Shown here in pieces: positions 5,866 through 8,800 of a stretch of 64,000 bases of DNA. This DNA comes from Oikopleura dioica (taxonomy: Eukaryota > Animalia > Chordata). The stretch spans positions 1,240,001 to 1,304,000 of the forward strand of contig OU015567.1 of the NCBI GenBank assembly GCA_907165135.1, given 5' to 3'. Position numbers and translations under genes: made by a program. Each line of letters opens with the position of its first letter. Within the stretch, counting starts at the first letter, position 1. The notes beneath the pieces were generated by a model, which did no database searches, was not told the origin of the DNA, and saw only the letters and a program-made list of their open reading frames with translations.

Positions 5866-8800
5866 ATGATCATAACTGAGCAGAAATCGTTGCCGTCGAT
5901 CGTGCCCGACTACTACAAGCAGCGTCAAATCGTTCTTCCCGCTCTTCGGGAATCCCTTGCTGAAGGTGCTGTTTGGCGACTGATTCCCTTCAAATGGTTT
6001 GATCTCTGGAAAACGATCGCCGAAAAGGACGAAAACTCGCGAAAATGTCCACCGCTGGATATTTCGATTTTGTTCGAAAATGGAAAATTGAAAGAAAATT
6101 TGATGGAGCAGGTTGACTACGCGATCGTGCCCGAAAATGTCTACGAGAAACTCGATGAATGGCACGGTAGGAAACGTAAAATAATGACTTTTTCGTCAAT
6201 TTTTATTTCCAGGGCTTCCGTCGAATCGTTCCTTCGAAAACGCGCGAAAAGTGATCAAAGTGGGCAAATTCACGGTGCGGCTGATGGTCGAAGTTTACAA
6301 AGTCAAGATTCAAATCATCCTCAAATTCTGCGGCAACGACACCTGCTCCGAGTCCAAAGGAAAGAAATACACTCTCAAGGATTTCACTCGCTTCCAGTCG
6401 AAGGCAGACATGATCAGGGACATTCTCGCGATGAATAACGACATTTATCCTAGAGAAGGACAAAAAACCAGGTAAAACTTTCTGTGGCTTTTTGTTTTAT
6501 TTCCTTTTTTAGAGTTTGGAGCCGCGAACATCACAAAGACAAGTGGCGACATCTGAATGAAGAGGCTCTCTCGCAGTCGCTCTACGAGCTTGGAATCAAT
6601 TCTAGCGGCCATATTCTCTGCGAGTTTCAAAATGACGATGGAAGCTGGCCTCAAGACTCGGAGCACGAAGAAAAGAAGACGCTGGCTTCGATGGTTTCGC
6701 CAAGGGGAGGAAAATGTGGTTTAGTCAATTTGGGAAACACTTGTTTTATGAATTCGGGAATTCAGGTAACGAAAAGGGATCGAGAAGGCTGATTTTTAGC
6801 TCTTTTCTAGTGTCTAGCTGCAGTAGTTCCGTTGGCGAATTATTTCCTCGGCGATGTCTGGAAAGATGAAATCAACACGGTCAATCCGCTGGGAACAAAT
6901 GGCAAACTTTCCAGCGCTTTCGCGAGACTGATCAAAAATATGTGGGGAGGGGCCGAATCGTCAGTTGCTCCAAGTGAAGTGAAACGAGAATGTGGACAGG
7001 TACTTATTATTTTACCCAAGAGTTTTGATTTTATTATGAATCACTTGTGCTTTTACTCATTGTTTTATACTATAAAATTTATAGCCGAGAATCTATCGAC
7101 TCTACTAGCTGTTTGATGCTTAGTTTACAAGAAATCAATTTGTAAAGCATTATTTAAAATCAACAATCAACCAGAGACTTTAAAGATTATGGTTCGCCAA
7201 GTCCTTTTCGAATTCGAGTTATTCGGAATTTATTGATTTCTTGATACTTCGAACAGAAAACGCTGCTGTATCTTTGACATAATCGACGAGCCCTGTCACC
7301 GACGTATCCTAAATGCAAGTTCAAAGGCCAAGTTTCATTTGAACCGTCGGTTACAGTTATTAACACAAACAGTATTGGCTTTTTCATACCTTGATAGAAG
7401 GAGCTTTATTCGCCCGCTCGTGGTTGTTTTTTATTATCATTTTATCCGTCGCCCTAGAATTTTACTGAAGAATGAAGCTAAAGGGACTATTCTTACGATC
7501 CCTTCGTGAGTTTGTATTTGTCCCGAATATTTTGTCGGACATTTGCGCGTTCGTATCGTCGAACTGCTTGTTTTTCGGCGAGTTGCTTTTCTTCTAGCTC
7601 TCGTTGTCGAAGAAGCTCTTCTTGTTCCTCTAGAATTTTGAATTTTTCAAAAGCCTCTTTTGACTCTTTTCGCTACCTTTTGCAGTCTGAGAATTTGCCC
7701 CGAGTTTTGGCGATCCTTGAATGGCGTTTTCAGCCACATCTGCCGGATTTTTACCAAAAGTTTTTCCTGAAAATCTGTTTTCTATGATTTGAAAAATGGA
7801 AAATCTTACCAAGTAAAAATTTGACAGGAATGCTGTTCATTTCATAACTCCTCTTCGTTCTGAATAGAAAAATGAATGATCGAATATTGCTTTCTTCTTC
7901 CTTTTGTCAAATCCAGGATAAGCTGGATTTTCGTCAAGAGCAGAATCGGAATAATTAATATCTCCTGACACTACGACTGTATCTTCTTGTTCATACGTTC
8001 ATTTTTTCGAAAGAGGGTTCGAATCACGTAGTCGAACGTATGGATGAGGTCATATTTCGATAAAGATAGAAGGGAGAAACCTGGAGCGACGAATTTTATC
8101 TAGACACTGGGTATTTTATTTCAATCTCAAGAAATTCTTGAAATTAGATAAGAGTTTAGATGGGCATGTGAATTTTAAACCTGAAACTTCTTGTTATGAA
8201 GATATTCAATGAAAAATGAGAAAAAAATGCTCTTCTGATAGTTCTATCATTGATAATTTATCACCTGTTTTCAGATCAACTCACAATTCTCTGGCTACGG
8301 CCAAAACGACTCGCAGGAGCTGATGTCGACGATTCTAGACTCCCTTCACGAGGATCAGAATCGAGTGATCAAAAAGCCGTACATAGAGAAGGCCGAAGCA
8401 AATGGACGCCCCGGTAAGCTGCTTTCACTACTTTATCGTTTCAATACCAGCGCGTTTCTCAACCGCTACTTGTCGCTTCTGACGAGCGCGGATAAGCGCC
8501 CCCTGTTTATACTAACCATCTTATCTGTATCTGCTAAATATTGATCCAAAAAATTAAGACGAGGAAGTCGCTGCTGAATCTTGGGACAACCACACAAGTA
8601 GAAATGCCTCGGTCATTGTTGACAACTTCCATGGTCAATTCAAGGTTTCTTCCGCCCCGAATCATCTCTTACTTTCGTTCAGAGCACCGTGCGCTGTCCC
8701 AAATGTGGCCGAGTGTCCGTCACATTTGACCCCTTCTGTACATTATCCGTTCCGCTTCCAGAAGCCGCCGTAAAGCTCCTTTCCTTCGTCCTTGTTCAGG

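Follow-up and report, generated by a model that had tools for sequence, protein, structure and literature searches.

The domain layout of complexins, with an accessory and a central helix, and the distinction between members that carry a CAAX box and members that do not have been described before (PMC4611016), as has the role of the amphipathic motif at the C-terminus (PMC5445133). Such proteins bind the assembled SNARE bundle at its groove with the central helix and the vesicle membrane with the amphipathic C-terminal segment, and they modulate fusion with the N-terminus and the accessory helix (PMC4611016, PMC5445133, PMC13454271). Here, we analysed a stretch of 64,000 nucleotides from Oikopleura dioica (hereafter the window), the minus strand of which, at positions 7219-7840, very probably holds a functional, protein-coding complexin paralog of five exons that encodes 135 aa and lies, in antisense orientation, within an intron of a USP4/11/15-type gene (Table 1). 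The gene is an ordinary member of the complexin family. The family is well known and an entry for the gene is already deposited (CAG5109692.1 / UniRef100_A0ABN7SWI4, hereafter P0001); what is new is the corrected gene model, the divergent-paralog relationship, and the conserved nested arrangement.

Compared with complexins of the mammalian Cpx1/2 type, the predicted protein is alike in its size (~135 aa), in an N-terminal M-x4-V-K-x2-L-G motif, in a long accessory-plus-central helix with R-x3-RQxIRDKY, and in the absence of a CAAX box. Its C-terminal segment may, like that of the family, be amphipathic, judging from its hydrophobic moment (0.52 for the best C-terminal 18-mer vs a mean of 0.31 for shuffled versions, 2% of which reach 0.52). 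At the other end, the Pfam alignment begins at profile position 2, and V, K, L, and G are the only residues that the N-terminal motif has in common with the activating motif of the MEFVMKQALGG type. The differences from the family lie in the N-terminal half of the central helix, which has diverged with loss of the R48 and Y52 equivalents and a three-residue insertion; in the C-terminal domain, which has no detectable sequence similarity to the Synaphin profile (exons scanned singly); and in the antisense nesting within a USP intron.

The preliminary description had claimed a 135-aa open reading frame in five exons with four GT-AG introns, and exactly this was found when the minus strand was read from 7840 to 7219 and translated exon by exon: the exons total 408 nt, i.e., 135 codons and a TAA stop, in a single open frame, and the intron phases are 1, 1, 2, and 0. 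Only fragments of the gene appear in the mechanical ORF list, which had been said to miss it, and the motifs quoted at the time (the M.... N-terminus, the helix motif of exon 3, and the 23 C-terminal residues) are all present in the translations. No Cys occurs in the in-frame translation of any of the five exons, and the C-terminus thus lacks a CAAX box, again as described.

Table 1. Features of the complexin-like gene and of the surrounding host intron (positions are those of the window)
Feature	Position	Strand	Description
Host exon before intron	6811-6999	+	ends ...SEVKRECGQ then gt; part of UCH domain
Host intron	7000-8274	+	1275 nt, GT..AG, phase 0; whole complexin-like gene inside
Host exon after intron	8275-8413	+	follows ttttcag; UCH profile positions 79-108
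TTCAG acceptor-like site	7860..7864	-	20 nt upstream of ATG; conserved among lineages
Exon 1	7840-7810	-	31 nt; ATG at 7840; 10 residues and first base of Gly; ends in phase 1
Intron 1	7809-7767	-	43 nt; gtaaga...tttcag
Exon 2	7766-7677	-	90 nt; flexible N-terminal region, ends ...SQTAK
Intron 2	7676-7630	-	47 nt; gtagcg...ttctag
Exon 3	7629-7497	-	133 nt; accessory and central (predicted SNARE-binding) helix
Intron 3	7496-7454	-	43 nt; gtaaga...ttctag
Exon 4	7453-7390	-	64 nt; linker of C-terminal domain
Intron 4	7389-7309	-	81 nt; gtatga...atttag
Exon 5	7308-7219	-	87 nt and TAA; C-terminal amphipathic segment
AATAAA, candidate poly(A) signal	7035-7030	-	~30 nt from host exon

The residues of mammalian complexin that contact the SNAREs are, according to the 1KIL complex and to mutagenesis, R48, Y52, R59, R63, I66, R67, K69, and Y70. 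HMMER alignments showed R59, R63, Q64, I66, R67, D68, K69, and Y70 to be identical in the window protein; R48 is replaced by E (L if the alignment is ungapped) and Y52 by Q, with an insertion of three residues upstream. Given that neither R48 nor Y52 has a conserved equivalent, the SNARE affinity or the partner choice of the window protein may differ from those of usual complexins, in the form of weaker binding or of another SNARE set. An AlphaFold2 model of P0001 from its single sequence, which covers exons 1-3, consists of one long helix at residues 36-83 (pLDDT 86-94 over 41-80) preceded by 35 residues of low confidence, and such a long helix with a flexible N-terminus fits, as does the size of 135 codons, the layout of complexins. 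In the working model that we propose, residues 1 to ~35 would form a flexible N-terminus and residues ~36-83 a single long helix, the C-terminal half of which carries the conserved SNARE-groove motif R-x3-R-Q-x-I-R-D-K-Y. By homology, this helix would bind antiparallel in the groove between synaptobrevin and syntaxin once the SNARE complex is assembled, and the last 50 residues, with their amphipathic end and no prenylation box, would hold the protein on vesicle membranes. Both SNARE binding and membrane binding by the C-terminal segment are proposed by analogy with known complexins, and their outcome would be that the window protein tunes regulated exocytosis. The gene itself lies inside the host intron together with an upstream region and a candidate poly(A) signal of its own, its transcription and the cell type being presumed.

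A canonical complexin locus lies on the same chromosome, 13 Mb from the window gene (at G000:C5:14.436 Mb; L002, i.e., G000:C5:14435222-14438317), and it is much closer to vertebrate complexins (MNFVMKQALGG..., ...EGMRQGIRDK) than the window gene is. Its helix exon, which ends in ...ENAREGMRQGIRDK, scored 26.4-26.6 bits against Synaphin when searched alone and, unlike the window gene, aligns R with mammalian R48 and W with Y52. Exon 1 of this locus encodes MNFVMKQALG and, as in the window gene, is 31 nt long and ends in phase 1; the place and phase of the first intron are shared by the two genes, and the later intron positions differ. Since L002 is canonical and its helix exon shares only 35% identity with that of the window gene, we regard the window gene as the divergent member of a two-member family. 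In Oikopleura, a chordate whose genome is drastically reduced, two very different complexins are retained, and their canonical and divergent central helices are a natural pair for asking which residues SNARE binding needs. A more specific account, which we consider conceivable but unlikely, is that the window gene is a larvacean-specific, fast-evolved paralog in which the upstream half of the helix has been re-tuned for another SNARE complex or for non-neuronal secretion, the canonical copy keeping the synaptic role. The re-tuning would then consist in the loss of the R48 and Y52 equivalents and the gain of an invariant RRY, and the massive secretion of the house by the oikoplastic epithelium could be a candidate route. 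Separately, at L002:1090-2000, no GT-AG join was found between exon 2, which starts at 1377, and the exon of the central helix, which ends at 1596, and the only in-frame join would require a 35-nt non-canonical intron at 1462-1496 (GG..AG) or, equivalently, at 1463-1497 (GT..GG).

The window gene had been described as easily left unannotated, which does not hold as such, since it is already in GenBank (record title Oidioi.mRNA.OKI2018_I69.chr2.g4201.t1.cds, O. dioica OKI2018_I69); what does hold is that this entry has no product name and is only 85 aa long. The deposited protein is identical to exons 1-3 (100% over 84 residues), after which it continues with one extra Ser and ends at a TAA inside the intron-3 donor gtaaga, and it is without the 50-residue C-terminal domain of the 135-aa model. 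The C-terminal domain is needed for membrane targeting and clamping in other complexins. We considered it improbable that the annotated 85-aa protein is the true product and that exons 4-5 are a 3'UTR or belong to a minor isoform, although 85 aa is what the deposited model, of the AUGUSTUS type, gives, and although in most lineages ...KGS is followed at once by TAA or TAG. The two models were compared by how the sequence beyond that TAA has changed among orthologous loci.

For this comparison, eight orthologous contigs (L003-L010) from marine metagenomes (ENA, JGI, Logan, and NCBI records) were aligned to the window, of which L003, L004, L007, and L010 are close relatives and L005, L006, L008, and L009 are diverged, with about half of the third codon positions different and with introns that are unalignable. 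In exon 3, differences between the window and L005 at codon positions 1/2/3 amounted to 3/3/22, corresponding to 20 synonymous and 5 non-synonymous codons of 43, and those between the window and L006 to 6/1/24. The same periodicity continues past the deposited stop: in exons 4-5 the position counts were 4/1/25 for L005 (24 synonymous and 6 non-synonymous codons of 51, including one misaligned final codon, as L005 actually ends ...NSD then TGA) and 5/2/26 for both L006 and L008 (21 and 9 of 51), i.e., 21-24 synonymous vs 6-9 non-synonymous changes over the 51 codons. Taken singly, exon 4 showed 7-9 synonymous vs 2-3 non-synonymous codons in the diverged loci, with its flanking AG and GT kept, and exon 5 showed 14-15 vs 4-6 (the L005 count again with the misaligned final codon). 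Exon 1 encodes an identical protein in 7 of the 7 orthologous loci that reach it (L010 partly), with synonymous changes only. Exon 2 is the most variable, and an in-frame 9-nt deletion in L006, L008, and L009 is the sole indel in any exon. All GT/AG splice sites are kept across the orthologous loci, the position of the final stop is shared by all loci that extend to the end of exon 5, one segment (13 plus 12 residues) in the central helix is invariant in all orthologs, and a C-terminal segment of 15 residues is strongly constrained among them. Judging from these codon patterns, every exon that could be compared is under purifying selection, exons 4-5 included.

Codon periodicity of this kind in exons 4-5 is not expected of a UTR, and both exons have conserved AG and GT flanks and a conserved downstream stop, whereas the 43-nt and 81-nt spacers around them diverge freely. 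Intron 4 in particular is much longer in L005, L006, and L008, where repeats amounting to a few hundred bases have been added and the exons stayed untouched. The stop on which the shorter product depends is part of the intron-3 donor, and this donor varies among lineages (gtaaga, gtagga, gtaaat, and gttaga). With the donor gttaga of L010, KGS is not followed by a stop, and a prokaryote-style gene call (P0006) therefore reads straight through. We concluded from this comparison that the five-exon, 135-aa model is right and that the deposited 85-aa model appears to end 50 residues early, so that the public gene model, which misses the C-terminal domain, is corrected here. Splicing of introns 3 and 4 is what we infer from conservation, and an 85-aa isoform could possibly arise by retention of intron 3. 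The additional sequence in intron 4 of the diverged lineages (L005:575-915; L006 and L008:990-1160) is an insertion of inverted GCGAAGCTTCGC-type repeats with a C-run, is absent from the window lineage, and may be a small mobile element.

The claim that the protein is a divergent complexin was borne out by profile and structure searches. Against Pfam Synaphin (PF05835, curated gathering cut-off 27 bits), P0001 scored 40.1 bits (E 5.7e-10), colinear over profile positions 2-78 of 142, and exon 3 alone (43 aa) scored 24.2 bits (E 4.5e-5) over positions 37-78; the searches used single exons or P0001 (exons 1-3). A six-frame search of the assembly (64.3 Mb, 19 contigs) with the same profile returned two loci only, the window locus at 28.2 bits, above the cut-off, and a second one 13 Mb away on the same contig. 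When the PDB was searched with exon 3, complexin-1 chains were the top four of the six matches listed and the sole ones with a scored stretch, and P0001 aligns to the complexin-1 of 5W5C, 3RL0, 3RK3, and 1KIL. Exons 2, 4, and 5 had no match when scanned singly against Pfam, and because of this the homology of the C-terminal region to the C-terminal domains of complexins is one of position and physico-chemistry only.

It is very improbable, in view of these matches, that the gene is no complexin homolog at all, i.e., that it encodes an unrelated small charged coiled-coil protein with a convergent IRDKY motif. Such a reading could draw on the high content of E, K, R, and Q in the helix, by which profile scores are inflated, and on the mere 35% identity to the helix of the canonical paralog. 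It could also draw on the phmmer search of exon 3 against 1.84 billion representatives, which reached the gene's own orthologs only (five near-identical Oikopleura-type proteins and no other complexins); this result is uninformative on the absence of kin, given the shortness and the biased composition of the query. Against convergence stand a Pfam score over the curated cut-off whose colinear alignment takes in the N-terminal motif, the rank of the complexin-1 chains among the PDB matches listed, the first intron with a place and phase identical to those of the canonical paralog, and a size and helix layout that are right for a complexin. A word-based search with P0001 returned orthologous fragments only, the 135-aa product apparently not being on record there, and in the literature no work on an Oikopleura complexin was found beyond incidental mentions.

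Two further readings, a pseudogene left to decay after duplication and an ORF that arose by chance within a long intron, might be suggested by the nested antisense position, by the tiny exons, and by a two-codon upstream ORF that overlaps the start in this lineage. The ortholog alignments effectively refute both: the frame is intact, none of the eight splice sites is lost, the protein sequence is kept though more than half of the third positions differ, and indels are in-frame only.

The plus-strand gene through the region had been assigned to the USP15 family, and this agrees with its domains, namely an N-terminal DUSP domain (56.5 bits) and, after it, a UCH catalytic domain with a Cys box that is matched in four exons, as well as with its best solved relatives, which are the DUSP-UBL chains of USP4, USP15, and USP11. 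The UCH matches include profile positions 1-18 and 79-108, which flank the host intron, and the limits of that intron in Table 1 follow from the exon that ends ...ECGQ before gt and from the next exon, which starts at 8275 after ttttcag. The host intron preceding exon 6811-6999 measures ~45 nt. Within the larger intron, 434 nt precede the complexin-like ATG and ~220 nt follow its stop. The nesting, for which conservation in other larvaceans had been raised as a point to check, recurs in Oikopleura-type loci: in both L006 and L008, the orthologous complexin-like gene stands between the two flanking USP exons, which run on the other strand, and L008 also keeps the DUSP exon and the taxilin-like neighbour. 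The arrangement is therefore conserved across diverged Oikopleura-type lineages, and we see in it a neat and unsurprising case of gene packing in a compact genome.

Several short elements accompany the gene within the host intron. The TTCAG upstream of the ATG may, by its sequence and place, be a spliced-leader or 5'UTR acceptor, and an AATAAA stands at the equivalent place in L005 and L008. The two-codon upstream ORF (ATGAAATGA), which runs into the start codon at 7837-7845 of the minus strand, is peculiar to this lineage; elsewhere the position reads TTTAAAAATG or a similar sequence. Further upstream, 85-120 nt before the complexin-like ATG, a non-coding block of ~36 nt (window 7925-7960, minus strand) is ~31/36 identical to L008:437-472. 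This block has TAATTA and TGACG, is conserved between lineages with unalignable introns, and is a possible promoter or enhancer.

Two other observations concern the host gene and its surroundings. Taxilin-like coiled-coil exons (window 2766-4545, minus strand) lie upstream of the USP gene in divergent orientation, and a Pfam Taxilin neighbour likewise lies beside the USP gene in L008. In the 3' part of the USP gene, short tandem-like repeats at 10300-11050 of the window give ORFs on either strand in which IG, NW, and QLE abound, and the stretch looks like an intronic microsatellite or minisatellite.
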